Sequence record: NC_070952.1
Length of the DNA stretch: 64,000 nt
Strand: one strand, 5' to 3'
Shown here: piece after piece, positions 48,790 through 62,334 of the stretch
Position numbering within the stretch: position 1 is the stretch's first letter
Layout of the letters: every line of letters begins with the position of its first letter
Translations under genes and position numbers: made by a program
The notes under the pieces: model-generated
Seen by the model: the letters and a program-made list of their open reading frames with translations, nothing else
Database searches by the model: none
Told to the model about the DNA's origin: nothing

Positions 48790-48807
48790 ATATTATTAGA
48801 GTGTAAA
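48790..48807 (+). promoter_or_regulatory. candidate phage early promoter motif
   Basis: ATATTATTAGAGTGTAAA. Confidence 0.65.
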
Positions 48808-48834: not shown

Positions 48835-49782
48835 ATGGAATCGTTAATGTTGCGTCGTTTTACTCGATCTGAAGAAGATGAACTGGATGTTTTCCACGGA
48901 ACCTCTGTAAAGAAATCCCAGGTAATTACCATAGGGCAGGTTCTTCTTCTTAACTGCTATTACCCAACCCAAGAATTTGAAGCCCCTCGTTTGAATGAGG
49001 CACTGTGCCAATTCAACTATGGTAACGGGCGTGTCTCTCCTTTCCTGAATAAAGTTGACGCTATCCGATTGACTGAATCATTACGTGGACTGTTACCGCG
49101 TATTCAGCGTGATGGCGAGCGCACCCAAATGGGTGATCGTTTAAAATGTGGTGAAGTTCAGATTAGCGGTACCGAAATGCATTTTGCCAATAATGGTGGT
49201 CGGTATAAGAACAGAGGAGATGCTGTTGAGTTTATCAGTGGGTTGATCTCTGGGTTAACTTCTTTTGTGGCGGAGAGTGGGGAACAGTATCCTTTCATCA
49301 CGAAAAAGAAATACGAGAACGGGGTTGACACCGATACCATGTTATTGGTTACCCATCACGGTGACTTAAGTTACGACGCTTTCCCTTCTTATCTCCGTTA
49401 CACCCACTCCACTAACGGACGGGGTGGTGAGCTGACTCTGCAATACGGACAGCTTCGCCTTTATTTAAATGAAGGACATACCCGTGGTGTGAGCTGGAAG
49501 CACTTCTTAGCTGTGCTGGCAGAAGGTCTGGCCAATGTAGCTAAAGCAATAGAAGACGGCGCTAAGCATCATACAGAACGTCTGTATGAAGATCACGTTG
49601 TGCTGGGTAAGTACAATTTCTATGTCGGGATGATTCGTGAATATCGTGGCACCTTTGTGGTCATTAGTTCCGATCTTTCCTGTACTAACTCTAAGGTGAG
49701 TTTTGTTGTTGAAAAAGACAACTTCACTCAGCTGAAGAATTTCATTAAAGCAGTTGTTCTTTATCTGGAGAAAGATAAATGA
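48835..49782 (+). CDS. hypothetical multi-module protein, probable paralog of 51360..52310
   Basis: GGAG RBS; similar length and C-terminal SD....N.K motif. Confidence 0.7.
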   Translation: MESLMLRRFTRSEEDELDVFHGTSVKKSQVITIGQVLLLNCYYPTQEFEAPRLNEALCQFNYGNGRVSPFLNKVDAIRLTESLRGLLPRIQRDGERTQMGDRLKCGEVQISGTEMHFANNGGRYKNRGDAVEFISGLISGLTSFVAESGEQYPFITKKKYENGVDTDTMLLVTHHGDLSYDAFPSYLRYTHSTNGRGGELTLQYGQLRLYLNEGHTRGVSWKHFLAVLAEGLANVAKAIEDGAKHHTERLYEDHVVLGKYNFYVGMIREYRGTFVVISSDLSCTNSKVSFVVEKDNFTQLKNFIKAVVLYLEKDK

Positions 49783-50447
49783 CTGATATTGCGGGCGTAC
49801 AAATTCCTGAGGGAATGAAAGTGGATAATGTAACCTTTAAGGAGAGTTACACCCAGGCTCGGGATGAATTCGGTAACGGTTATATCGAATTCGATATTGA
49901 CGGCAAGATTAAAACTGCTGAGTACACCAATACTTCTTATGGTTCTCCACCTAAGGACGTAAAGGGATACAACAAGTCCATCAAAAACTTCACTGGTATT
50001 CTGGACTTAATTGATTTCACAATCATTGCAGTGCGTGGTCAATTGGTATTTGGATTTGGCTGCGCGGTACCTGAAGCTATGGCTATGTTTACTTCTTTCT
50101 ATAGTTGGGGGCGTATCTGGGAAGAAATGCGTGGACATTTTGGTTCACTGAAAGAAGAAGACATAGAGGCGTTTGAATCAGCCCTGAATCATTTTATCAA
50201 GGGGTTATCGAAACCTTTAGATGAAGAAATTGTTTCTGAGGACTTTATTGATCAGACTAACCCTTTCTTTTCCCACTACAGCGGGCATATGTCGTCGGCT
50301 GCTTGGATGAGTCATATCCATAGTGTTCGTGAGTTGTATCAACGCGGTTACGTAACCGATAAAGATTCTTATTTGGAAGAGCGTTGGGAAGGAAGCTTCG
50401 CCAAAGAACGCACACTTCCTGTAATTCAGGGAAACAAAAATGACTGA
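49779..50447 (+). CDS. hypothetical protein
   Basis: ATGA overlap; GGAG RBS. Confidence 0.7.
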   Translation: MTDIAGVQIPEGMKVDNVTFKESYTQARDEFGNGYIEFDIDGKIKTAEYTNTSYGSPPKDVKGYNKSIKNFTGILDLIDFTIIAVRGQLVFGFGCAVPEAMAMFTSFYSWGRIWEEMRGHFGSLKEEDIEAFESALNHFIKGLSKPLDEEIVSEDFIDQTNPFFSHYSGHMSSAAWMSHIHSVRELYQRGYVTDKDSYLEERWEGSFAKERTLPVIQGNKND

Positions 50448-50829
50448 TAAAATCAGTAAAGTGGTGGAGCTGATTAAAGTAGCTAAACCAAAGAACGTTT
50501 GTGTGTTATTGGAAGTCCCGGTGGGTCATACCTTTGACGATGCCAAAGTAAACAGCCGTAATGTTCAGCGCTTGGATGAGATCTTAGGTGAGGTAGAAGA
50601 TGGGGCGGTTGATCCATCTATTCCTATGACATGCCATCTCGTCACCAAGACACCTGTTAAAGAAGGGCATGCACAGATTCTTCCGATGTACTCTTTCTTT
50701 GATCCAAAGGTGAAACTGCGCAGCGTCATGGTTTATGATCTGGTTCTCGTTAAATGCCTCGACAACAAGTACCTGGTTATGAAAGTACCGGAAGGGATTG
50801 ACCTTCTTCCATTCGCTCAGCTTGATTAA
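50440..50829 (+). CDS. hypothetical protein, degenerate alpha/beta family member
   Basis: YDLVLVKCLDNKYLVMKVP resembles ADIVLYLNMYEQWVVMKTP of 54305..55270. Confidence 0.65.
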   Translation: MTDKISKVVELIKVAKPKNVCVLLEVPVGHTFDDAKVNSRNVQRLDEILGEVEDGAVDPSIPMTCHLVTKTPVKEGHAQILPMYSFFDPKVKLRSVMVYDLVLVKCLDNKYLVMKVPEGIDLLPFAQLD

Positions 50830-50841
50830 AAGGAATAAACG

Positions 50842-51246
50842 ATGGTTGATTGTGATTTGCCTGATTGTCAGTTTGATCCTATCGATCAACGAGACGGTTC
50901 CGATAAGCATTACATTCGTGCGGTCAGTTCCCGTCGTTCTGGGAAATATTTGGTCCGTAACTTGGAACACATTGCTATTGCATTGGATATCCTCCAAGTT
51001 GCCAAGTGTGTAGAAAGCATCGGTGACAGCGAAGGGGTTGATTCTAAGCTTCTGCAAGGCCGGAATATTAATGTCATCTTTGGCATTAAAGGAAATGGAA
51101 CCTGGGCAGGTTACCGTCAATATGTACTTGATAAATACAATATTGATATGGGTCCAGTTCCTGAAAATGCACAGCGTCCGTATTCTGTTACCATTGAAGT
51201 CACTATCCATAACTGGCTGAATGGCGAACCGCTGTTGTTTTATTAA
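50842..51246 (+). CDS. hypothetical protein
   Basis: AAGGA RBS; contains SSRRSGK. Confidence 0.7.
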   Translation: MVDCDLPDCQFDPIDQRDGSDKHYIRAVSSRRSGKYLVRNLEHIAIALDILQVAKCVESIGDSEGVDSKLLQGRNINVIFGIKGNGTWAGYRQYVLDKYNIDMGPVPENAQRPYSVTIEVTIHNWLNGEPLLFY

Positions 51247-51359
51247 TGTATTACTGAAGTAGTAATAACTGGGGATCACTGACCAAACTCCCCATTGCAA
51301 TAAAAACGGTCTAACTGACCAATATCTTTTATCATTCAAACATAAATAGGAATGAACAC

Positions 51360-52310
51360 ATGTTAAAATCTAAAGAGTCCTACTCATCTGAAAAGGCTTA
51401 TATCCGAGCTTTCTTTTTACATAACTCTTATACCACAGATTACCCCATCGACCCAATCGTGGGATCTTTCATTAGAGTAATTCATCCGTGTGAAGATCAG
51501 CCCACTGGTGACGGTAAAGGTTATTATACTCGACCTCAAGTTTTGTTCTTTGGTAATGGAAATTTGAGTCGGTTCTATGAACTGACCGACATGATCAAAA
51601 TTAAAGGTGACCTGGAATTTATGATCGACGCTATTTCTAATTCCAAATCCCCTAAAGAGGTTAATCTTGGAATAAATAGCGTATTTCATGTTAAGCATGG
51701 AAATATTTTCTTTAAGGCTCACGGATCTGAAACAAATACGTATTTTGCATCAAACCCTTTGTCTAGACCCCCTAGTTATGTAAAGGCGATGTTTGATAAC
51801 CTATTGGATTCGATGGATCGCATTATTAATGGAGTTCCGCCCAAGGACAGTGTACTTGAACTGGACGATATGATAATGGCCACGCTTAAATATCAAGTGG
51901 ATGGTGTGCGTTCTGCTATCATAATGACCGCTCGTAAATTTGAAAGTCGCGAACTTAATTTTATTATGCTTAGAAGATCGAATCAGCTGATGACCATTCC
52001 CCACTCATCTAAAGTTAGTGCGCGTGAGTATATTGTACCTTTCTTAGATTTAATCGAAGAAATAGGTGAAGCATTATTAGCTAAACCCGATCTAGAAAGG
52101 ATTGTTCGTTTTGTCGGGGAGCAAGATGATAACATGGAATATATTAACTCTCGGTATGCCGATCTGGGATCAGGCCCTAAGGTATTCACGACGCTTAATA
52201 GTGACCGCTATCCGGCTAATACCAAAATTAACCTTGGCTACGATCCTATTTTTCACAAACAGTTAAAAGAGAAGGTAGTCGAGTTCTGTAATCGATTCTC
52301 TACTTTATAA
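51360..52310 (+). CDS. hypothetical multi-module protein, probable paralog of 48835..49782
   Basis: 316-aa AT-rich ORF. Confidence 0.7.
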   Translation: MLKSKESYSSEKAYIRAFFLHNSYTTDYPIDPIVGSFIRVIHPCEDQPTGDGKGYYTRPQVLFFGNGNLSRFYELTDMIKIKGDLEFMIDAISNSKSPKEVNLGINSVFHVKHGNIFFKAHGSETNTYFASNPLSRPPSYVKAMFDNLLDSMDRIINGVPPKDSVLELDDMIMATLKYQVDGVRSAIIMTARKFESRELNFIMLRRSNQLMTIPHSSKVSAREYIVPFLDLIEEIGEALLAKPDLERIVRFVGEQDDNMEYINSRYADLGSGPKVFTTLNSDRYPANTKINLGYDPIFHKQLKEKVVEFCNRFSTL

Positions 52311-52341
52311 ATACCCTTACCATAAAGTTTATTATTTAACA

Positions 52342-52369
52342 TGTTTACCCAGGACGTCCTGGGTAAACA
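52342..52369. repeat. perfect 28-bp palindrome
   Basis: TGTTTACCCAGGACGTCCTGGGTAAACA. Confidence 0.7.
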
Positions 52370-52389
52370 GTTTAGGAGAATTATTTTTT

Positions 52390-53202
52390 ATGTCTTTAGC
52401 TAATATCGTTTCGAACGTAATGAAGAAGTATACGGTTAACCCAAAGAAAGTTTCGCTGTTCTTAAAGAACAAAAACCTGGGTGATGATGTTTACCAGTTA
52501 GAAGAAGCAATTGCTCTTTTCAAACCTTCTACGCTGGTGATTGGGTTTACCTCTGAAGACTCTCACGCAGTCAGCACAAAGCTGATGGATGTGTTGAAAG
52601 ATCTTTTCCCAGAGATAAAGCTTTATCGTTTCCCTATTAGTCGTAAGTCTAATGGTGAGATGGTGATCAGTTATTCGTATAAAGTTGATGATGAGGACGT
52701 TCCTTATTACCCTAATGCTTCTCAAATGGATTTTATTCTTCCTGACTTTGGTATTGTCATCACAGAAGAGTTATCCATTCTGTCATTCCGACCAGCGTCT
52801 ATCCCTGGGAATGTCAAGTTTAAAGCGGGCGATGTATTAGAAGAACGTAAAGACGAACTTCGTACTCTGGATGTTGAGAAAGAGTACCCGACAGATGACA
52901 TGTATATCGTTAATGACCTGACAAAGAAATGGGTCAAGCGTATTCTTATTTGTCACGCCGGGGATATCCATAAATCCAAAACGATGAATGACCTTACCAA
53001 GATTATTCGTTATGTCTTAATTAGTAAACCACGGATCACTATTCAGACACAGTGTTTGCTTGATTCTGAATCAGCAGCGGATGACCTGCTTGAAACGTAT
53101 AAGACGGCTGACATTGTTCTTCAGCTGGGTGACGAGATTAAAGTCTACGAACCTGAAGACGATGAGCTGGGTGAAGAAAAAGGTTTCCTCTTTTTAGAAT
53201 AA
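52390..53202 (+). CDS. hypothetical protein with two degenerate alpha/beta modules
   Basis: LKDLFPEIKLY; ITIQTQ...ADIVLQL. Confidence 0.7.
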   Translation: MSLANIVSNVMKKYTVNPKKVSLFLKNKNLGDDVYQLEEAIALFKPSTLVIGFTSEDSHAVSTKLMDVLKDLFPEIKLYRFPISRKSNGEMVISYSYKVDDEDVPYYPNASQMDFILPDFGIVITEELSILSFRPASIPGNVKFKAGDVLEERKDELRTLDVEKEYPTDDMYIVNDLTKKWVKRILICHAGDIHKSKTMNDLTKIIRYVLISKPRITIQTQCLLDSESAADDLLETYKTADIVLQLGDEIKVYEPEDDELGEEKGFLFLE

Positions 53203-53210
53203 GGTTAATC

Positions 53211-53609
53211 ATGAAACTTGATGATCTGGTACATTTTCCAATGACAGGAAAGTCTAACTTTACTTTGGATGATATTCTCTTTATGGGTAGCGTTAAAACC
53301 CTAGTGATTGTCCAGAAATCCAAAGGTGAATCATCGGCAGAAGCACTGAAGAAAGAAATGAGTGAGTCTCGTAACTCGCGGGTTTCCAGTATTGTGGTGT
53401 ATTGCGTTCCGTCCGGTGAACCAAAGTTCGATTACAATCCTTTTAATTCGGGGGCTCCTATCTTATTTGAAGAGGTAGGATTAACCAGTGCTATTCTGCT
53501 TGATGTTGAACTCATGGTGATGGAAGAAGAAGGAAGGATGACAGTCATGCGTTATACTGATTTTCCTTCTACCATTGCGCTCTCTAAACGTTATTTTGGA
53601 CGACCATAA
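53211..53609 (+). CDS. hypothetical protein, degenerate alpha/beta family member
   Basis: AAGG RBS; KTLVIV...DVELMVM...TVMR. Confidence 0.65.
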   Translation: MKLDDLVHFPMTGKSNFTLDDILFMGSVKTLVIVQKSKGESSAEALKKEMSESRNSRVSSIVVYCVPSGEPKFDYNPFNSGAPILFEEVGLTSAILLDVELMVMEEEGRMTVMRYTDFPSTIALSKRYFGRP

Positions 53610-53860
53610 TGAAGAAGATTATTCTAGCTTTGTTGTTAGTGTCTGGGTTTGCAAGTGCGACTGTTAACACCATTGATAATATCAATGGTTCTGAAGGTCC
53701 GTATAAGTCCGGTCGCATTATTGTCCAACAAACGGGAGATGGAGATATTTATACTGATCAGAAAACTGGCTGTCAGTGGTATATCATCTCCACAGGTACA
53801 GATGCAAAAATAGACCTGGGTTGTTTCCCGGAGTTTATTTCTGAAGAATTCAAAAAGTAA
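53609..53860 (+). CDS. small secreted protein (DUF6440-like TDxxTGCQ motif)
   Basis: Signal peptide MKKIILALLLVSGFASA; YTDQKTGCQWY; two Cys. Confidence 0.7.
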   Translation: MKKIILALLLVSGFASATVNTIDNINGSEGPYKSGRIIVQQTGDGDIYTDQKTGCQWYIISTGTDAKIDLGCFPEFISEEFKK

Positions 53861-53881
53861 GTGCCATATATCTTCAAGTAG

Positions 53882-53899
53882 ATATTATTAACGTGAAGC
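53882..53899 (+). promoter_or_regulatory. candidate phage early promoter motif
   Basis: ATATTATTAACGTGAAGC. Confidence 0.5.
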
Positions 53900-53960
53900 T
53901 GAAAAGCTGGGAAGACGAATACGTACTTCCTTTATCTTCTTAACCTTAGTGAGAATAAAA

Positions 53961-54293
53961 ATGCAAATATTTCAAATTCACGAATTACTTGAAAATAGTC
54001 CTGGCCTTACTGTTACACTTATTCCTGGTTACGGTAGCGGGTACACTGATGATCAACAAGAGTTTATCAATGGTCATGTGATGGATATGGTTGGACGCCT
54101 TCGTCAACTCGATCCTTCTGTGAAAATTGTTATCTCTTCGATGGACACCAATACCTCTATCCGCGAAGCCGAAATTAAAACGGTGTCGCTGGCACTTACT
54201 TCCGACATTCTTTTGTATGTTACCCCTACCTGCGTGAGCATTGCAAAGTGGCGTCGGTTCCACGATCGTGTTGGTTCTACTGTAGGTAGCTGA
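53961..54293 (+). CDS. hypothetical protein resembling the C-terminal half of a RecA/DnaB-type fold
   Basis: RLRQLDPSVKIVISS...SDILLYV...IAKWR. Confidence 0.65.
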   Translation: MQIFQIHELLENSPGLTVTLIPGYGSGYTDDQQEFINGHVMDMVGRLRQLDPSVKIVISSMDTNTSIREAEIKTVSLALTSDILLYVTPTCVSIAKWRRFHDRVGSTVGS

Positions 54294-54304
54294 TCGAGGT
54301 TGGT

Positions 54305-55270
54305 ATGGAACTTCATCAACGTTGGCTTGCTGTATTACGTGGTGAGCGAATGAAAGATAAAATAGCTCTTGCTGAAGGCAAGATCACTAACGAGGAATAT
54401 ATGGAAAACGTTAACTGGCATAATCATAATAACATCAATCGGCGATACGGTGCTGTTGGACGTGAACGTCAGTTCGTCGAAGCGGGTAAATTGATTAAGA
54501 ACAAAGAGAAAATTCTGGTGCTGGTACCTCATGGCACGTCCGAAGAACTGAACGCGAACTCGATCAGATTCTGGAATCTTCAAGACGTCCTTCTTAATGC
54601 GGTTTATCAAGAAGATCCTGACTCTGCAGATTTGAAAGATCCTCATTATGTATTGATGGATCCCACATTCGATGAGTTACGCAACCCAACTGGTTTGATT
54701 CAGAAAGAAATAACCAAGGCTGACATTGTTCTGTATTTGAACATGTATGAGCAATGGGTTGTGATGAAAACCCCTCATCAGGAATTGGATAACCGTTATC
54801 TGTGGGTTCTGGAAATTCCGGCAGTCAAGCTGGATGATTTGTTTGTTAACAATCCCAAAGAAGTCTGGGTCTACATCGACCATCGTCTCGGTCACACCAA
54901 TGATTGCGAGAATCTGTATCATGGATTCGCTGAACGTCTGGCCAAGGTTAAACCAGATGTTAAACTTCATCTCATGTCTGGTCATCCACATACTGAATGG
55001 ATGCGCGATAAAGAGATCGTTCTGATGGCGGGTCGTTTTGACTTCTTCGTTAAACACGCTCCGCAAACCCCGCATATTGCGAAGGTTATCCCTCTTAACG
55101 AGTTAGTCGAACCTGATTCAAAAATACATCAACACCTGTATTTTGGTCATTCCACTCTGACATCTCAATGCCGCACTGAGTTCTCGCGTGAAAAACCACT
55201 GATGCCATATGAAGCACCAGGGGCTGGGTACTGTGCCGATAAACTGATTCCCGATTCTGACGATAAATAA
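54305..55270 (+). CDS. hypothetical protein with two degenerate alpha/beta modules
   Basis: ADIVLYL...VVMKTP; VYIDH...RLAKVKPDVKLHLMS. Confidence 0.7.
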   Translation: MELHQRWLAVLRGERMKDKIALAEGKITNEEYMENVNWHNHNNINRRYGAVGRERQFVEAGKLIKNKEKILVLVPHGTSEELNANSIRFWNLQDVLLNAVYQEDPDSADLKDPHYVLMDPTFDELRNPTGLIQKEITKADIVLYLNMYEQWVVMKTPHQELDNRYLWVLEIPAVKLDDLFVNNPKEVWVYIDHRLGHTNDCENLYHGFAERLAKVKPDVKLHLMSGHPHTEWMRDKEIVLMAGRFDFFVKHAPQTPHIAKVIPLNELVEPDSKIHQHLYFGHSTLTSQCRTEFSREKPLMPYEAPGAGYCADKLIPDSDDK

Positions 55271-55332
55271 GAAGTAACCCTTATACCAATGTAGTAACAC
55301 CCACCACTCATTTTTAAGTAATAGGATATATC

Positions 55333-55767
55333 ATGTCACAGAACAAACCTTTCGGTAAGATTCAAGATGCACGCGTTAAAGAACTGGTAGAGAATGCCGA
55401 GATCCATAAAGACACTCACCACATCACGTTCAAAACGCCGGCGTCTTTGTCTCCGGAAAAGATTGATCAGATGAAAGAAAGTGTTACCCTGATCAATGGC
55501 TGGGGTCTGGCGGTTGAGGCGGCGACTAATGAAATCGCTCATACTCAATTCCCAGAAACCAAGCAAGAATCCTGGGACGGTCGTTTGTCACTGTTTGATG
55601 GACTGACGATGAATGCCGATGCGCGTCTTAAAGAGACCATTGGTGATGACACCATCTTTGGTGGTACTCAACTGTTTATCGATCATCCACATTCTCAGGA
55701 CATGGTTGATTGGTACTCTACCTTCACTGAAACCAACATCGAACGTGCTAAGAAACTGTTTGACTGA
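55333..55767 (+). CDS. hypothetical protein
   Basis: AGGA RBS; followed by a hairpin. Confidence 0.75.
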   Translation: MSQNKPFGKIQDARVKELVENAEIHKDTHHITFKTPASLSPEKIDQMKESVTLINGWGLAVEAATNEIAHTQFPETKQESWDGRLSLFDGLTMNADARLKETIGDDTIFGGTQLFIDHPHSQDMVDWYSTFTETNIERAKKLFD

Positions 55768-55788
55768 TTAGCTTGCCAGCAGGCGATG

Positions 55789-55815
55789 CCTCCTCTGGGT
55801 TAGTCCCAGAGGAGG
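55789..55815 (+). terminator. terminator hairpin
   Basis: CCTCCTCTGGG-TTAGT-CCCAGAGGAGG. Confidence 0.6.
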
Positions 55816-55837
55816 TTCACTAAGAGGTTTTATTTTT

Positions 55838-56176
55838 ATGCTAAACGAATCCGTTTATTCTAACTTTGAAAAGACGTTTAGTTTGTTCTTAATGCGGTGT
55901 AACCAATTGGATATCGTTGCTCACGATAAGACTAATGCGTTTAAAGATTTAAGAAGGTTAATGCGCGGTGTTTGTAAAGGACCCATTAATCCACTGCTTT
56001 ATAAAAAGTTTGGAGTATCCAATCAGACATATTGTAATTCAAGTATGTGGTCACTGACTTTATCTAATCGCAATGGTGATCTATTATATTTAGATTCGGC
56101 CAATTACCCTTATTTCAAACACTGGATTCTTAATATCAAAACAGCTCCTACACTTAATATATGGAAGTGGTTATGA
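55838..56176 (+). CDS. small tandem-paralog family member 1
   Basis: LTLSNRNGDLLYLDSANYPYFKHWI. Confidence 0.6.
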   Translation: MLNESVYSNFEKTFSLFLMRCNQLDIVAHDKTNAFKDLRRLMRGVCKGPINPLLYKKFGVSNQTYCNSSMWSLTLSNRNGDLLYLDSANYPYFKHWILNIKTAPTLNIWKWL

Positions 56177-56532
56177 TGTATGAGACATTAAGTATCATCC
56201 GCATCATGGCTTGCGATAATAAGAAACGCATGCGACCTCGCAATATTAAAATGCGGGAAGTGGATAAAGAGTTTGCTCGCATTATCAAAACAGTTCGCTT
56301 AGGGAAACCTGTTGCTAAGACTGGGTACATGTACCTTAAGGTGACCGAGAAACGTGAGGGAGATCATGGGTGGGAACTTCACCTTCAGGCTTTCAATACC
56401 CATGGTTCAAAAGTGATCATCAATCGTTCTAATTGGAGTGATTTCAAAAATTGGGTAGAGGGGCGTGGTTGGAACTTCATCTGTAAACCATCTACCATGG
56501 AACAATGGAATCGTGATTATGGACAAAAATGA
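56161..56532 (+). CDS. small tandem-paralog family member 2
   Basis: DKEFARII...HGSKVIINRSNWSDFKNWV; true start may be 56173 or 56176. Confidence 0.65.
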   Translation: MEVVMMYETLSIIRIMACDNKKRMRPRNIKMREVDKEFARIIKTVRLGKPVAKTGYMYLKVTEKREGDHGWELHLQAFNTHGSKVIINRSNWSDFKNWVEGRGWNFICKPSTMEQWNRDYGQK

Positions 56533-57097
56533 ACACGTCAAACACAAACGCAAAATCGTTGTCCCACCACCTGGTTTAATAGGATTCATTTCAAGCCACC
56601 GTCTCACTCCTGTCAAGAGATTAACAGGGGGTAAGTTAGTCCCCACTGAAAAATACTTGTTGGACGTGAAGTTATGTTTCTTCTGGCCAAGCTCATATGT
56701 CGAGATTCATAACAACGCTGATGAAGACCTGATGTTATCCTTCAATGCTTATCTTGATAAAATCAAAATGATCAGGGTAATGTGTGAGGATATGGTCGAA
56801 CATCTGAATACTGGTAAGGGTCCTTTCGTTAGACGTGAGTTTCTTAATGACGCGACAATTAACGATGGGTTTGGTGGAACACTGTTTATGACAGCTGATC
56901 CAGATCATCCAACCAACTATTGTATCTTTGAAGTGTCTAGCTGTTATAAGAAATATCGACACAGTGGAACACCGAGCGTTTTAAAGAAATACCTTAAAGA
57001 TCTAATCTCTTTTATTAACGATGCGGAAACAGACCTCGTCCTTATAAAAGAAAAGATTGATCAAACTTTGTTGGAGAAAAAGAAGGATGAAAAGTGA
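56519..57097 (+). CDS. hypothetical protein, paralog of 58373..58972
   Basis: RREFLN...FEVSSCYKK...LISFINDA. Confidence 0.65.
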   Translation: MDKNEHVKHKRKIVVPPPGLIGFISSHRLTPVKRLTGGKLVPTEKYLLDVKLCFFWPSSYVEIHNNADEDLMLSFNAYLDKIKMIRVMCEDMVEHLNTGKGPFVRREFLNDATINDGFGGTLFMTADPDHPTNYCIFEVSSCYKKYRHSGTPSVLKKYLKDLISFINDAETDLVLIKEKIDQTLLEKKKDEK

Positions 57098-57416
57098 CTT
57101 CTACAAAAATCTGGGATTGATCGTGGCGAGCTCAATACAAGACTCGCCCAGACCGATCACAGATAAACGAAAGCTCAATGAAATAAAGGGAGAGTTAAGG
57201 AATATCTCCAGGGTCTTTCTTTCGGGTGGACGAAGTCTGATAAAGAGCGATTATTTCAAGATTACACCGGGGCGTGATTTATTCATACTCTCCTCTCTTT
57301 CTGGAGGAAACGGGGTGGTCATTAATAAATCAAATGTTCAATTGTTAACGGACTGGGTTGAGCATGGCTCTAAACCGTTAACCCTTGCTGCGTGGAAGAT
57401 AACGTATGGAAAGTGA
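57087..57416 (+). CDS. small tandem-paralog family member 3
   Basis: MKSDFYK; GNGVVINKSNVQLLTDWV. Confidence 0.65.
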   Translation: MKSDFYKNLGLIVASSIQDSPRPITDKRKLNEIKGELRNISRVFLSGGRSLIKSDYFKITPGRDLFILSSLSGGNGVVINKSNVQLLTDWVEHGSKPLTLAAWKITYGK

Positions 57417-57864
57417 TTTTTATAAAAAGTTGGCCAAGTTACGGGTCTACACAGTTAACTCCGTGTTAGAGCGTTCTAAACGCTCCTCTAAGCAAGTCTC
57501 AGAGGACTTCGATAAAGAACTGACTCGTATTGCCAATTCGATTCAGAATGGCTACACGTTGGGCGCACAGCGTATGTCGGCTATGGGTGAGTTATATCGC
57601 CCTTATAAGTATTTGAACGTCACCATGACATCCATTAACCACCCCGAGTTAAGTGTGGTTCAACCGGACAGAAAGTGGAAGAATATTTATAAACCTACAC
57701 ACCCGCCTGCTATCTGTGTGGTAATTACTCGTGGTTCAGTTTCGGTAACGGTAACTGATGAAACAATCAGCAAATTGATCGCGTGGTCCAAGTCCTGGCG
57801 TAAACAGAAACCTACTACGTTTGAGGAATGTGAACAAGATCATTTCTATCAGCAATGGTGGTAA
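57406..57864 (+). CDS. small tandem-paralog family member 4
   Basis: MESDFYK; FDKELTRI; SVTVTDETISKLIAWS. Confidence 0.65.
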   Translation: MESDFYKKLAKLRVYTVNSVLERSKRSSKQVSEDFDKELTRIANSIQNGYTLGAQRMSAMGELYRPYKYLNVTMTSINHPELSVVQPDRKWKNIYKPTHPPAICVVITRGSVSVTVTDETISKLIAWSKSWRKQKPTTFEECEQDHFYQQWW

Positions 57865-57865
57865 T

Positions 57866-58372
57866 ATGAATAATGATCAACTCAAGACTTTTATGACCAA
57901 TCTCGATTATCTTCGGGAAAGGTCATGTCTTGCATTTGTTCACCAAGGAATTACATTTGATCAGATCTTTGACTTATTGGATAAAGAGTTCAAAATAGCT
58001 AATTGTGCTTTGAAATCCAAAATCAAACCTGACTATGTATTCAAGGTGATAAAGGTTGATTTCCGTAAACTCCGCTACCACTCTATTACTATTTCAAGTC
58101 AGTTAGGGTTTACCATGATTCTGAAGAAAGAACACATGGGGTACTTTAACAGCTGGGTGGTTTCAGAGAACGACAGGAAAGCGGTGGGATTCCGAAGTTG
58201 GATGGAGATCGGAAAGACTATCTATAAAGCCATTGACGGAGATGGTGATTGGTCAGTTAGCGATGAGCTGAGAATCAGACATAAGAAAGGGTCTTCAATG
58301 ATGTACAATGGCGAGGTAGAAAAATATCACGTCATGGTTGATAAAGCGAATCGTACATTGGGACTTAAATAA
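57866..58372 (+). CDS. small tandem-paralog family member 5
   Basis: LDKEFKI; GFTMILKKEHMGYFNSWV. Confidence 0.65.
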   Translation: MNNDQLKTFMTNLDYLRERSCLAFVHQGITFDQIFDLLDKEFKIANCALKSKIKPDYVFKVIKVDFRKLRYHSITISSQLGFTMILKKEHMGYFNSWVVSENDRKAVGFRSWMEIGKTIYKAIDGDGDWSVSDELRIRHKKGSSMMYNGEVEKYHVMVDKANRTLGLK

Positions 58373-58997: not shown

Positions 58998-59015
58998 ACA
59001 TTATTACAGTGTAAA
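58998..59015 (+). promoter_or_regulatory. candidate phage early promoter motif
   Basis: ACATTATTACAGTGTAAA, about 28 nt upstream of the exported-protein array. Confidence 0.6.
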
Positions 59016-59042
59016 TCCCACTTAAATTTTAAAGGTATTGTA

Positions 59043-59591
59043 ATGAAAAAGTTAATTTCTATTCTGATGTTTGCGGTTGTTCTGTTCTCTGGTTACGCTG
59101 TAGCCGAAGTTAATAAAGCCGGCTGGATGCCTGTTAGTTCAGTCAGCACTGGTCAACTTATCGGGATGACCAACATTGGTTCTCACGGCGGTGAGCTGAC
59201 TCTGCTGTGTGATGTCAAAACACACAAGTTACGCATGGACTATAAAGGCGGTGAAAATCGTTACGACTTGTTCGTATTCTACACCGGCGATAATCCAGAC
59301 ATGACTTCCCCAGACCTCAACGGTAAATTCATCGTTGGTATGAACAGTACAACCCAGGGTCAGGTTTATTATAATGTTCTGAAGGCAAAAGAAACCTTCG
59401 TGATCGCTCGATTCCCGATGGGTTCTGGTGCGAAATACCTTCGCGCGCTGGCCATTGGAAATGAGAATATACCTGAGATCCAACAAGAAGGCGATGAGTC
59501 TTTCTTTGCGGGTTCTGCGATGCGTGAGATGCTGCATGAACTGAGTACCTCATGTCCAGTTAACCAAAACAAAGATCAAGCCGTTTTTTAG
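59043..59591 (+). CDS. exported two-Cys paralog 1 (Sec signal peptide)
   Basis: MKKLISILMFAVVLFSGYAVA; LTLLCD; STSCP. Confidence 0.75.
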   Translation: MKKLISILMFAVVLFSGYAVAEVNKAGWMPVSSVSTGQLIGMTNIGSHGGELTLLCDVKTHKLRMDYKGGENRYDLFVFYTGDNPDMTSPDLNGKFIVGMNSTTQGQVYYNVLKAKETFVIARFPMGSGAKYLRALAIGNENIPEIQQEGDESFFAGSAMREMLHELSTSCPVNQNKDQAVF

Positions 59592-59674
59592 TTGGATGAA
59601 ATAACAGGTATACATAATCAAATTGACTTTAAGCCTTGCGGCCTTTGTGTTGTAGCGTTTAATAAAGGGTGTGC

Positions 59675-60268
59675 ATGAAACGTTTGATCCTGTTACTTGT
59701 TATCGCCTGTTTTACCATGAAGTCATTCGGGCAAAAACCCGGCGTGTACATCAACCAGATCGCCCCCTATCCACGGTTTGATGTATTTGGTACTTTAGGT
59801 CGAACACAAATTACGTACACCAACGGTGATGATAAAAATCCTGAATACTTCATTATTACTTGTGATAAGAACAAGCAAGAAATGAACGTGATGTATTACA
59901 TCACACATGAAGGATTCCAAATCACCGATGCCAATTATTTCACTATTCAAAAGTATCCTCAAAGGTGGTTGAAGATGACCCCTCCTTATCATGCCCCATC
60001 GGCAGTTATTTACGATGCAGGTATGGGCGGTGATGGTAAGTATCTTGTTGCTGCTTTAAGGGGACTGCTGAATGACAGTGATTGGGGTGTGGTTATTACT
60101 TTTGAAACGTACGTTAATGAACACGACATCATTACACAAGCGTGGTCCGACATTATTCCCTCAGAAATACTCAAGCGTGATATCACTTCATCCGACCTGA
60201 GTATCTGTGAGACAACGAAATTTAATTCCATTTTACCTTTAGTGAGTTTCTCAAATGAAAATCCGTAA
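59675..60268 (+). CDS. exported two-Cys paralog 2 (Sec signal peptide)
   Basis: MKRLILLLVIACFTMKSFG; FIITCD; LSICE. Confidence 0.72.
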   Translation: MKRLILLLVIACFTMKSFGQKPGVYINQIAPYPRFDVFGTLGRTQITYTNGDDKNPEYFIITCDKNKQEMNVMYYITHEGFQITDANYFTIQKYPQRWLKMTPPYHAPSAVIYDAGMGGDGKYLVAALRGLLNDSDWGVVITFETYVNEHDIITQAWSDIIPSEILKRDITSSDLSICETTKFNSILPLVSFSNENP

Positions 60269-60884
60269 TCTGTTTTATTTCATCTGTTTTTCCCTGATGT
60301 GTTCAGGCTTCGCAATGGCAGCGTCTTATGACGTGAAAGAAGATGTGAAACAACCGGCACTCGTTGCTGACCTGGCTTCAGTTTCTGCAGACAAGGTAAT
60401 GTCAGGTATTGCTGATATCACTCTGACCCTGAAGAACTCTGAAACCAATACCACGCAGCGTGTTGTGTTGCAGTGCGATACTACCCAACAGACCATCACC
60501 TCGTTCTATTACCTGAATGATGTACTGGGTGGGAAAGCCAAAGGTGCAACCGGGTTCCAGGTGAACGTTTATGACGGACCAGAGGCCGGCTATAAACACA
60601 ATGGTGACGTCAAACTCTTTGACAGTTCTAAAGATAAAGACAACCTGCGTAAATCCTTTGATCGAATGAAGAAATTAAACGGCGTGGGATTCATGTCATT
60701 TGAGTTCTTTGAAACCACTAATGGTATTGATCATAATCCAGTCGCTCACTCTATGTTACTCTCCAGCAGTTATCTGAAGAAAATTCTGGCAGCGATGGAT
60801 GAGTTCCCGGATGTGGACGGCTGCAGTATTAATGGCGGCGCGGTTTCAGTCTACCCATTAAAGAACCTGACTGATTCCATTTAA
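60255..60884 (+). CDS. exported two-Cys paralog 3 (Sec signal peptide)
   Basis: ...LMCSGFAMA; VVLQCD; VDGCS. Confidence 0.75.
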   Translation: MKIRNLFYFICFSLMCSGFAMAASYDVKEDVKQPALVADLASVSADKVMSGIADITLTLKNSETNTTQRVVLQCDTTQQTITSFYYLNDVLGGKAKGATGFQVNVYDGPEAGYKHNGDVKLFDSSKDKDNLRKSFDRMKKLNGVGFMSFEFFETTNGIDHNPVAHSMLLSSSYLKKILAAMDEFPDVDGCSINGGAVSVYPLKNLTDSI

Positions 60885-60917
60885 CGCTTCCAATTACCTT
60901 AGCGAGAAACATAAGAA

Positions 60918-61505
60918 ATGAAGAAAATGTCCAAATGGCACTGGGCTCTTGTGGGGATGACAGCCATCATTGTCATTGGTGTATTGTCAGGGCCTACCGG
61001 AGTGGTGGATAAGTACAAAACCCCTGAAGTGGCAAAAGTGGTAACACCGGACAGCGATCCAACCGATCTGATTGTACCACTTTCATTTCAGTTTCCTAAT
61101 TTAAACGCTAAGGTGGAAATGCGCTGTATTGATCCAAGTACAACCCACAGTGGGTTCTCTTGGGATGTGTCAAGTCTGGATAAGAAAAACCCACCACCGG
61201 CGACAAAGATTTTCTTTAACTTTGCCAAGTCTAAAAGAGATCCACTGGTTGCATCAGGTTGGCGGGGGATTCAATCTCCTAATGACAAGCTTCCTATGGG
61301 AGATGCATTTATGCTGACTGCGATACAGTTGAAAGACGCTGGGTCACAAAGCTATAACCACTATGTGTTTGCAGTTGCAAGTTCATTAGAGGCGGTACGC
61401 AATGTGTCTCAGGAAGATGTGGTTTATGTTCCTGTTGGTGTGGTGTCAATGATATCCACTACCACGATGACATCAAACCCGTGCTCCACGCTACAAACCA
61501 ATTAA
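60918..61505 (+). CDS. exported two-Cys paralog 4 (N-terminal signal anchor)
   Basis: WALVGMTAIIVIGVL; VEMRCID; SNPCS. Confidence 0.7.
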   Translation: MKKMSKWHWALVGMTAIIVIGVLSGPTGVVDKYKTPEVAKVVTPDSDPTDLIVPLSFQFPNLNAKVEMRCIDPSTTHSGFSWDVSSLDKKNPPPATKIFFNFAKSKRDPLVASGWRGIQSPNDKLPMGDAFMLTAIQLKDAGSQSYNHYVFAVASSLEAVRNVSQEDVVYVPVGVVSMISTTTMTSNPCSTLQTN

Positions 61506-61507
61506 AC

Positions 61508-61539
61508 TAACTCTACTTCCTTAACGGGAAGTAGAGTTA
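61508..61539 (+). terminator. terminator hairpin (TACTC-like family)
   Basis: TAACTCTACTTCC-TTAACG-GGAAGTAGAGTTA. Confidence 0.65.
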
Positions 61540-61569
61540 ATCTATTCATTTCTTTTAGGATCTTTCTGT

Positions 61570-62232
61570 ATGAAAAAGTTAGTTTACGGTGTTATGGTAG
61601 TTATGATGTTTTTATTGGTTGGTTGCGATAAAGACAATAACGAAATTGACATGAGCAAAAGTTCGACTGCGAAATCCCATTACAATGAGGAAGATGTTTA
61701 TGGTCCAATCGTGCATGTGGGTGTTATCGCGGATAACGTGGTAATCAAGAATCTCAAATACAGCGAGGACTTGTATACCTACGCAATCGGGATTAAAGCG
61801 GACAAGCCGCATAACGCCGTGGTTGGGTTAATCTGCGATCATCGTTTAAACGGCGCCGCCATTACCTATTCAATTAAAAATGATGACGGGGTGGTACCTA
61901 ATGGTCGGGTTGATATTTCAATTATGAAATACCGTCCAGGAGTAAAGGATATTCGTGAAGCGGATGAAGATGCAGACCCGGTATTCTCCACCGCTAACGG
62001 CGACACCGATTTCTTAGCCGGGGCGCGTAAAGCTGCAGGACTTCCTGCAGATACCATGCTTGCTTTTGTCATTGACAAGGATCAAGAAGACGGATCGTCT
62101 AAAGGGGTTGCCTGGACTTCTCTCTTCACAGCCAAGCAATTAGACAAAGCGTTATCAGGAACCAAAGATAAATGTGGGAGTCTAAAATTGGATTTGAACG
62201 ACACCTACATCGTAGCAGCAAAGGACTCATAA
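61570..62232 (+). CDS. lipoprotein, exported two-Cys paralog 5
   Basis: Lipobox LLVG|C-D; VGLICD; KDKCG. Confidence 0.78.
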   Translation: MKKLVYGVMVVMMFLLVGCDKDNNEIDMSKSSTAKSHYNEEDVYGPIVHVGVIADNVVIKNLKYSEDLYTYAIGIKADKPHNAVVGLICDHRLNGAAITYSIKNDDGVVPNGRVDISIMKYRPGVKDIREADEDADPVFSTANGDTDFLAGARKAAGLPADTMLAFVIDKDQEDGSSKGVAWTSLFTAKQLDKALSGTKDKCGSLKLDLNDTYIVAAKDS

Positions 62233-62247
62233 CGTAATCCTTTGACG

Positions 62248-62271
62248 GTAGAGTGCGATATCGCACTCTAC
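62248..62271 (+). terminator. perfect palindrome/terminator (inverted TACTC-like arms)
   Basis: GTAGAGTGCGATATCGCACTCTAC then T-rich tract. Confidence 0.65.
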
Positions 62272-62316: not shown

Positions 62317-62334
62317 ATATTATTATGTTGATAC
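62317..62334 (+). promoter_or_regulatory. candidate phage early promoter motif (divergent match)
   Basis: ATATTATTATGTTGATAC. Confidence 0.45.

Follow-up and report, generated by a model that had tools for sequence, protein, structure and literature searches.

Fast-diverging family of small predicted alpha/beta modules encoded by five genes of Erwinia phage AH04

The window analysed in this work, 64,000 nucleotides of sequence record NC_070952.1, is the right end of the record of Erwinia phage AH04 (MZ501267.1, 262,639 base pairs), an OBP-like jumbo phage whose host is Erwinia billingiae; window positions 50000-56000 are identical to positions 248639-254639 of the AH04 record. Five genes of this region, AH04_272, 275, 276, 278 and 279 (here g272, g275 and so on, with gp272, gp275 and so on for their products), all lie on the plus strand and are all annotated 'hypothetical protein'. 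We confirm that they form one fast-diverging multigene family, built of modules of about 100-130 amino acids (aa); with their counterparts in the phages OBP, Kc263 and pEt-SU and in about ten metagenomic phages they make up one module family with a confidently predicted architecture. Judged by the ATPase motifs, which are absent, the modules are not ATPases. Tentatively, and a little short of calling it probable, we take them for an early-expressed, fast-evolving family of non-catalytic binding modules serving host takeover or counter-defence, in which gp278 and gp279 would probably work together. Jumbo phages carry hundreds of genes without assigned function, and this family is undescribed in Pfam, PHROGs, NCBIfam and PADLOC, searches of which gave nothing above noise for the five module proteins and their neighbours.

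Sequence evidence for one family

The original prediction counted about seven modules in these genes, two each in g275 and g279 and one in each of the others, and this count is borne out. Its coordinates for the five open reading frames (ORFs) agree with the record: g272 at 50440-50829 (129 aa, one module), g275 at 52390-53202 (270 aa, two), g276 at 53211-53609 (132 aa, one), g278 at 53961-54293 (110 aa, one) and g279 at 54305-55270 (321 aa, two). Direct similarity among the AH04 proteins is only faint by blastp, with gp278 matching gp279 residues 175-260 at an expectation value (E) of 9e-4 and gp272 matching gp279 at 0.07.

Eight module families were compared with one another by hhalign, the N- and C-terminal modules of gp275 and gp279 being denoted by N and C, and the same families were set against 21 unrelated families from the same loci as a control (168 pairs, maximum score 21.9, 95th percentile 17.7). 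Five module pairs exceed all 168 controls, namely g275N-F130a (55.5), g276-F130a (38.0), g272-g275N (27.4), g279N-F130a (24.5) and g272-g279N (23.4), where F130a is an extra gene family of about 130 aa that adjoins the g276 orthologs in related phages. Three more pairs are borderline (g272-g279C 20.6, g275N-g279C 18.1 and g275C-g278 18.0), and the module-module scores as a group lie above the controls even with the two strongest pairs excluded (Mann-Whitney p = 4e-4). The pairwise alignments are colinear and keep a constant register. A single MAFFT alignment of 69 modules is likewise colinear, with a common order of motifs: a helix with L.(D/E)L, then PK.h and strand 1, a loop, helix A, P.hKh and strand 2, aDhhL as strand 3, and hh.K in the hairpin.

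The words that had first drawn attention to the family are indeed present, and they fall at the junction of helix A and strand 2 and in strand 3 with its hairpin. A pattern composed from LKDLFPEIKL, LRQLDPSVKI and LAKVKPDVKL has three matches in the window's 106 ORFs, confined to g275, g278 and g279, against a shuffled mean of 0.07. One of the ADIVL...VMKTP type has three in the same ORFs, confined to g272, g278 and g279, against a shuffled mean of 0. Since both patterns were composed after the matches were known, there is some circularity in this test. The least secure member of the family is g276, which is tied in solely through the F130a profile.

Predicted structures

AlphaFold2 models were obtained for gp279 (alignment A1; mean predicted local distance difference test, pLDDT, 78.6; predicted template modelling score, pTM, 0.67) and for gp275 (model m9017937ed319; 12-sequence alignment; pLDDT 76.4). 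The first consists of an N-terminal helical region, two modules (N, residues 54-171; C, residues 172-270 with pLDDT about 90-97) and a tail predicted to be disordered, and the second contains two modules. All four modelled modules have the same order strand-helix-strand-(helix)-strand-hairpin, in fuller form strand-helix-strand-helix-strand-strand(hairpin)-strand. The predicted layout of a module is a helix, strand 1, a loop, helix A, strand 2, (helix B), strand 3 and a hairpin of strands 4-5.

When the gp279 model is compared by Foldseek with the predicted viral structures of BFVD, entries of 270, 110 and 129 aa are found before all other viral proteins, at probabilities of 1.00, 1.00 and 0.97. 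From these lengths, and from an accession block that is gp279's own, they would be gp275, gp278 and gp272. Also matched are a pEt-SU protein, entries of 150 and 275 aa, as long as the two Kc263 proteins, and entries of 310 and 117 aa, which are as long as OBP_294 and OBP_293 and have accessions that follow one another. The family entries have E values from 2.9e-9 to 8.8e-3 and probabilities of 0.97-1.00, except for the 117-aa entry (E 0.044, probability 0.72), and the entry of gp278's length, with probability 1.00, reaches a template modelling (TM) score of 0.56. No g276-sized entry appears in the BFVD list for the gp279 model. PolG2 (8d33), ThrRS (3a32), CobU (8yep) and a LacI-type protein (3gyb) are among the best matches of gp279C, gp275C and gp279N, which suggests that the modules share one fold.

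It is highly improbable that the five genes encode no family at all, but unrelated small alpha/beta proteins made alike by composition and a common fold. Many hhalign pairs do stand at control level (g279N-g279C at 12.0 and g275C-g279C at 11.6, for example) and the fold type is a common one, but this would leave unexplained the five pairs above every control, the Foldseek probabilities of 0.97-1.00 with which gp279 matches entries as long as gp275, gp278 and gp272, the 69 modules in one colinear alignment with common motifs, and the OBP proteins that bridge the groups, of which OBP_294 fuses two module types (see below).

Are the modules derived from RecA-type ATPases?

The original prediction saw in these modules catalytically dead half-domains of the RecA/DnaB type. 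That they have no Walker A motif is borne out: a search for the pattern [AG]xxxxGK[ST] in every ORF of the loci and every protein retrieved gave no match in any module protein. The nearest approach to it is a GxGKS-like HGCGKSYT in one lineage of gp278 orthologs. A Walker-B-like YVLMD occurs in gp279N and is mostly conserved in alignment A1; in the other modules its place is taken by S, G or T, or has no counterpart to it.

Structural comparison gives a weak likeness. Among solved structures, the first Foldseek match of gp279 is KaiC (E 3.4e-4, probability 0.3-0.7, TM-score about 0.13), followed by RecA (5e-3); the tail of the BFVD list consists of DnaB-like helicases (probability 0.07-0.28). 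In a second pass over Foldseek's own list, both gp279 modules align over 79-97 residues to RecA-superfamily cores. The VIA-align scores of the N-module are 5.4 for RecA, 5.3 for gp4, 5.2 for FlaH, 5.1 for KaiC-CI, 4.9 for DnaB and 4.8 for the ThrRS anticodon-binding domain, and those of the C-module 6.0-6.3 for the anticodon-binding domains of aminoacyl-tRNA synthetases (aaRS) and their like (ProRS, Gcn2), 5.8 for KaiC-CII, 5.3 for gp4, 5.2 for DnaB and 5.1 for RadA. The RecA-type scores lie below noise level and are no better than those of unrelated folds. On these matches, the modules can be described as a common five-stranded alpha/beta architecture, which the RecA core holds as a substructure and of which the anticodon-binding domains are the pure form.

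At the level of sequence nothing relevant was found. The Pfam families of KaiC-type ATPases (PF06745) and DnaB_C (PF03796), which match 14 of 14 control genomes, have zero matches across the AH04 record at E <= 10, and no RecA-type family is matched by the module proteins at E <= 1. Profile A1 of gp279 finds only four chance-level matches among the sequences of the Protein Data Bank (E 0.14-0.36). Homology to DnaB was also sought by hhalign, with a C-domain profile made from E. coli dnaB and 80 gammaproteobacterial homologues (81 sequences), and was rejected: the modules score at most 21.6 (over 36 columns) and their merged profile 15.8, against up to 20.0 for decoy families and 16.1 for a reversed DnaB control.

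The order of motifs attributed to DnaB is correct, as E. coli DnaB reads LIMIDYLQ, LKALAKEL, PVVALSQL, DADLIMFIY and IIGKQRNG. The register proposed from it, in which a module would be the half of the core that starts at the Walker B strand, does not give the best superposition and is probably wrong, since the RecA-type alignments all begin just before the P-loop strand (for example at residue 212 of E. coli DnaB, whose P-loop is 231-238, and at residue 27 of KaiC-CI). The best hhalign register to DnaB, although not significant, likewise sets the strand-1 loop at the P-loop. If the modules are RecA-like, then, strand 1 would be the former P-loop strand and the loop after it, found as PVGHT, PHGTS, LGHT or PGYGSGYT and in two gp278 orthologs as HGCGKSYT, a P-loop remnant.

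Taken as a whole, it is possible that the modules are RecA/DnaB half-domains: they are indeed small alpha/beta modules without Walker A and with a weak Foldseek likeness, but all Pfam, Protein Data Bank and DnaB profile tests fail them. Compared with the cores of the RecA superfamily (DnaB/SF4, KaiC, RadA and RecA), they are half the size, lack Walker A, have no family-wide Walker B and no profile match; compared with the class II aaRS anticodon-binding domain (HGTP_anticodon, with the look-alikes PolG2 C-terminal domain and Brix), they have no Pfam match. The decoy function first proposed for them can be put as follows: the modules, miniaturised dead cores of the RecA/DnaB/KaiC type, would mimic subunits and so cap, poison or titrate ring ATPases of the host (DnaB, RecA or Rho, for instance, or those of defence systems). 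We regard it as unlikely. It would account for the KaiC match, for DnaB-like/SF4 helicases being the commonest named BFVD proteins after the family itself, for the strand-1 loop falling at the DnaB P-loop, for the Walker-B-like pattern of gp279N, and for ADIVLYL...VVMKTP and, in distant relatives, VLKARGT, which are reminiscent of DADLIMFIY...IIGKQRNG; but TM-scores of about 0.13, the silence of the Pfam families at E <= 10 and of the Protein Data Bank profile search, hhalign scores no better than those of decoys or of a reversed copy, and a module half the size of the core all speak against it. We see a small chance that a P-loop or RecA-type domain was stripped to a mini-module without motifs and expanded into an early family of false ring-ATPase subunits or nucleotide-signal sponges, which, if true, would add a new class to the takeover or anti-defence proteins of phages. 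Descent from RecA-type subunits, or mimicry of them, would give phages a new route to interfering with ring ATPases; if the modules are not RecA-derived, they are still a defined and tractable target family.

Distribution, shuffling and divergence

The family is confined to OBP-like jumbo phages. In a tblastn search of 50,697 phage records, Kosakonia phage Kc263 was the only other phage with a match to gp275, and gp279 had none outside AH04. A word-based protein search returned 19 relatives of gp279, all on metagenomic contigs (several of 127-271 kilobases), and for gp275 one protein when used alone and three with an alignment. Among 1.84 billion representative proteins, a profile from the gp279 alignment picked out only 20 at E <= 1e-3, on related phage contigs, and no RecA, DnaB or other cellular protein.

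The loci compared were eight syntenic loci (L003-L011), the Kc263 region (L002) and the region of Pseudomonas phage OBP (L095). In all of them the slot is constant: the prohead protease gene (Peptidase_S80) lies upstream of it and an HD phosphohydrolase gene downstream. Within it, modules occur singly, in tandem and shuffled between genes. OBP_293 (117 aa) is recognised by the hidden Markov models of both F130a (1e-10) and g275N (8.7e-8). In OBP_294 (310 aa, identical to P0032; L095 7496-8428) a gp279C-type module (100-182, 2.5e-16) precedes one of gp278 type (201-300, 5.5e-6); the two types, which sit in separate adjacent genes in AH04, are therefore fused in OBP, and this suggests that gp278 may pair with gp279. 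The proteins P0008, P0021, P0026 and P0028 have two or three modules each. In P0028 (L011 6001-7206) there are three, each ending in a hairpin motif (K/R)(A/S)R (KARGT, KARGD and RSRAS).

The region is hypervariable. Identity to the nearest relatives is 79-94% for the flanking genes g267, g268, g280, g287 and g293; it is 21-29% for g275, about 35% for g274, 29-58% for g278 and 25-85% for g279. The genes g271, g273, g276, g281 and g282 are present or absent depending on the relative.

Expression and possible role

Upstream of g278-g279, at 53882-53895 on the plus strand, lies a promoter-like motif, ATATTATTAACGTG, found at the same place in L002-L010 and directly upstream of OBP_294. A second copy, ATATTATTAGAGTG, lies upstream of g270 (48790-48803, plus strand), and further copies upstream of g289 (about 58998-59011) and g293 (about 62317-62330); in general form the motif reads (G/T)ATATTATTA(N2)GTG. 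Its positions are conserved in all the related loci, from OBP and Kc263 to the metagenomic relatives. When up to one mismatch is allowed, the AH04 record contains it 13 times forward and twice in reverse, against 1 + 1 in the control. No further copy was found between the one at 48790-48803 and g277, and there are hairpins between the genes; the copy at 48790-48803 probably starts a unit that runs into g272-g277. A scan for sigma-70 promoters gave fewer sites than in shuffled sequence.

A review of jumbo-phage RNA polymerases (PMC7598289) identifies the conserved AT-rich motif of about 10 nucleotides upstream of operons in such phages as the early promoter, used by the virion polymerase; by its account no other conserved motif can be detected computationally, and middle and late promoters escape a search of this kind. 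The AH04 motif fits this description and is probably an early promoter for the virion RNA polymerase, which makes early expression of the module genes likely.

The location of the products can be approached through OBP, whose record labels the protease homologue OBP_283 a virion structural protein and all of OBP_284-OBP_309 'hypothetical protein', suggesting that the OBP counterparts were not detected in particles. We think it very unlikely that the modules are structural or assembly parts, be it packaged head proteins, substrates of the prohead protease or components of an infection vesicle or a nucleus-like compartment. The cluster does begin about 2.4 kilobases downstream of the prohead protease gene g268 (Peptidase_S80 in relatives), and phiKZ-like phages do have paralogous families of head proteins; but hypervariability and gene presence or absence are unusual for structural genes, and the motif upstream is of the early-gene type.

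In gp279C the residues D192, H193, T198, E202, N203, H206, S225, G226 and P228 are invariant or nearly so in alignment A1. The model places them where strand 1 ends, helix A begins and strand 2 ends, at the edge that commonly serves alpha/beta domains for ligand binding. With this cluster of conserved polar residues, the C-module at least is not simply 'dead'. All module proteins are acidic (isoelectric points, pI, of 4.85-5.9), which argues against direct binding of nucleic acids by them.

The modules might be binders of small ligands that contain phosphate, acting as sensors or sponges for nucleotides, for molecules derived from nicotinamide adenine dinucleotide or for cyclic-oligonucleotide immune signals, held by the glycine- or histidine-rich strand-1 loop. 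With this would agree the clustering of the gp279C residues at the C-terminal edge of the sheet, the invariant G23, G25 and Y28 in the glycine-rich loop of gp278, proteins that are small, acidic and probably early, and a variation as fast as that of counter-defence genes. We nevertheless hold it to be quite unlikely, as pocket residues differ between paralogues, no likeness to known sponge families is found in PADLOC, Pfam or PHROGs, and a search of the Protein (ESM) Atlas with the gp279 C-module gave no usable match and hence no lead.

Hypervariable, early-expressed phage regions usually house functions of host takeover or counter-defence. The reading that we prefer, of non-catalytic binding units, would have the modules made early in infection and acting in the host cytoplasm. 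Partners or ligands, differing from paralogue to paralogue, would be bound at the C-terminal sheet edge (the strand-1 loop and the end of strand 2), and the family as a whole would serve takeover or counter-defence. We infer the binding role and the location outside the virion, as we would any descent from RecA-type or P-loop domains.

Several points weigh against this reading. The early timing is based on the motif and on a review statement, and the argument for a place outside the virion is drawn from the annotation of another phage. The conserved polar pocket could equally belong to an unrecognised enzyme. The links of g275C, g278 and g279C to the other modules are at control level by sequence and come from the predicted structures, in which the BFVD entries of 270, 110 and 129 aa were identified by their lengths and accession block.

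The individual modules

All modules lie, like their genes, on the plus strand. That of g272 (50440-50829) shows a helix ..VVELIK.., a strand VCVLLEV, the loop PVGHT, a strand YDLVLV and the hairpin YLVMKVP, and has orthologs in 10 related loci, OBP_291 among them. In g275 the N-module (52390-52839, residues 1-150) is modelled with strands at 48-53, 77-85, 120-124, 130-132 and 143-145 and a helix at 56-72, and is colinear with the stand-alone F130a proteins of relatives (hhalign 55.5, E 6.5e-9); the C-module (52867-53199, residues 160-270) ends in ADIVLQL and a hairpin. The g276 module (53211-53609) aligns to F130a at 38.0 (E 5.9e-6) and to g275N at 19.5, and was found in 3 of 7 related loci. 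The g278 module (53961-54293) has the glycine-rich loop PGYGSGYT after strand 1, ends in SDILLYV...IAKWR and, in alignment A4, has K96 and W97 as invariant residues besides the three of its loop.

The product of g279, which contains 17 histidines, begins with a helical region (54305-54451, residues 1-49) with a GKITNEEY helix, modelled as helices 3-11, 14-23 and 29-39; in ten distant relatives Pfam gives sub-threshold SHOCT matches only (E 0.012-0.03). Its N-module (54452-54817, residues 50-171) carries KILVLVPHGTSEE, YVLMDP, ADIVLYL and WVVMKTP and is modelled at pLDDT about 90 with strands at 54-59, 69-73, 114-118, 141-145, 151-155 and 165-170 and a helix at 79-103. The C-module with the conserved polar residues follows (54818-55120, residues 172-272); 20 relatives have one or two modules of its type per protein, and in Kc263 it stands by itself (hhalign E 1.6e-15). 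The tail (55121-55270) is predicted to be disordered, with pLDDT below 50 from residue 282. Following the first helices, most of the relatives compared (P0001-P0011) have an insert (..EVYALR...LFLNGRSGG..) that is helical and about 40-90 aa long, and most carry a C-terminal extension of about 70 aa (ELT.MS..RFG..LVDP.TGL..SKEEQDKH); the AH04 protein has neither and is therefore a shortened version.

Neighbouring genes

Lineage-specific arrays of paralogs are known from the accessory arms of phiKZ/OBP-like jumbo phages, an example being the array of exported two-cysteine proteins at 58998-62271, which shares with the module genes the same arm, the upstream motif, tandem paralogues, fast divergence and presence or absence among relatives. 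The module proteins differ from it in having no signal peptide, another predicted fold and shuffled single and double modules.

Directly downstream of g279 is a second paralogous set, g281-g286 (55838-58372), which encodes small basic proteins (pI 9.4-10). In it g282 matches g284 by blastp at 5e-7, the g284 and g285 families align by hhalign at a probability of 91%, and g284 and g285 have the N-terminus M(E/K)SDFYK.L in common. Within the module cluster, g277 (53609-53860) encodes 83 aa with an N-terminal signal peptide and two cysteines; it is kept in 7 related loci, OBP_290 included, and the homologue in Kc263 carries the annotation of an RcsF-like outer membrane lipoprotein. Finally, g270 (48835-49782) and g274 (51360-52310), each of about 315 aa, align by hhalign at 25.8 over 252 columns and may be remote paralogues.

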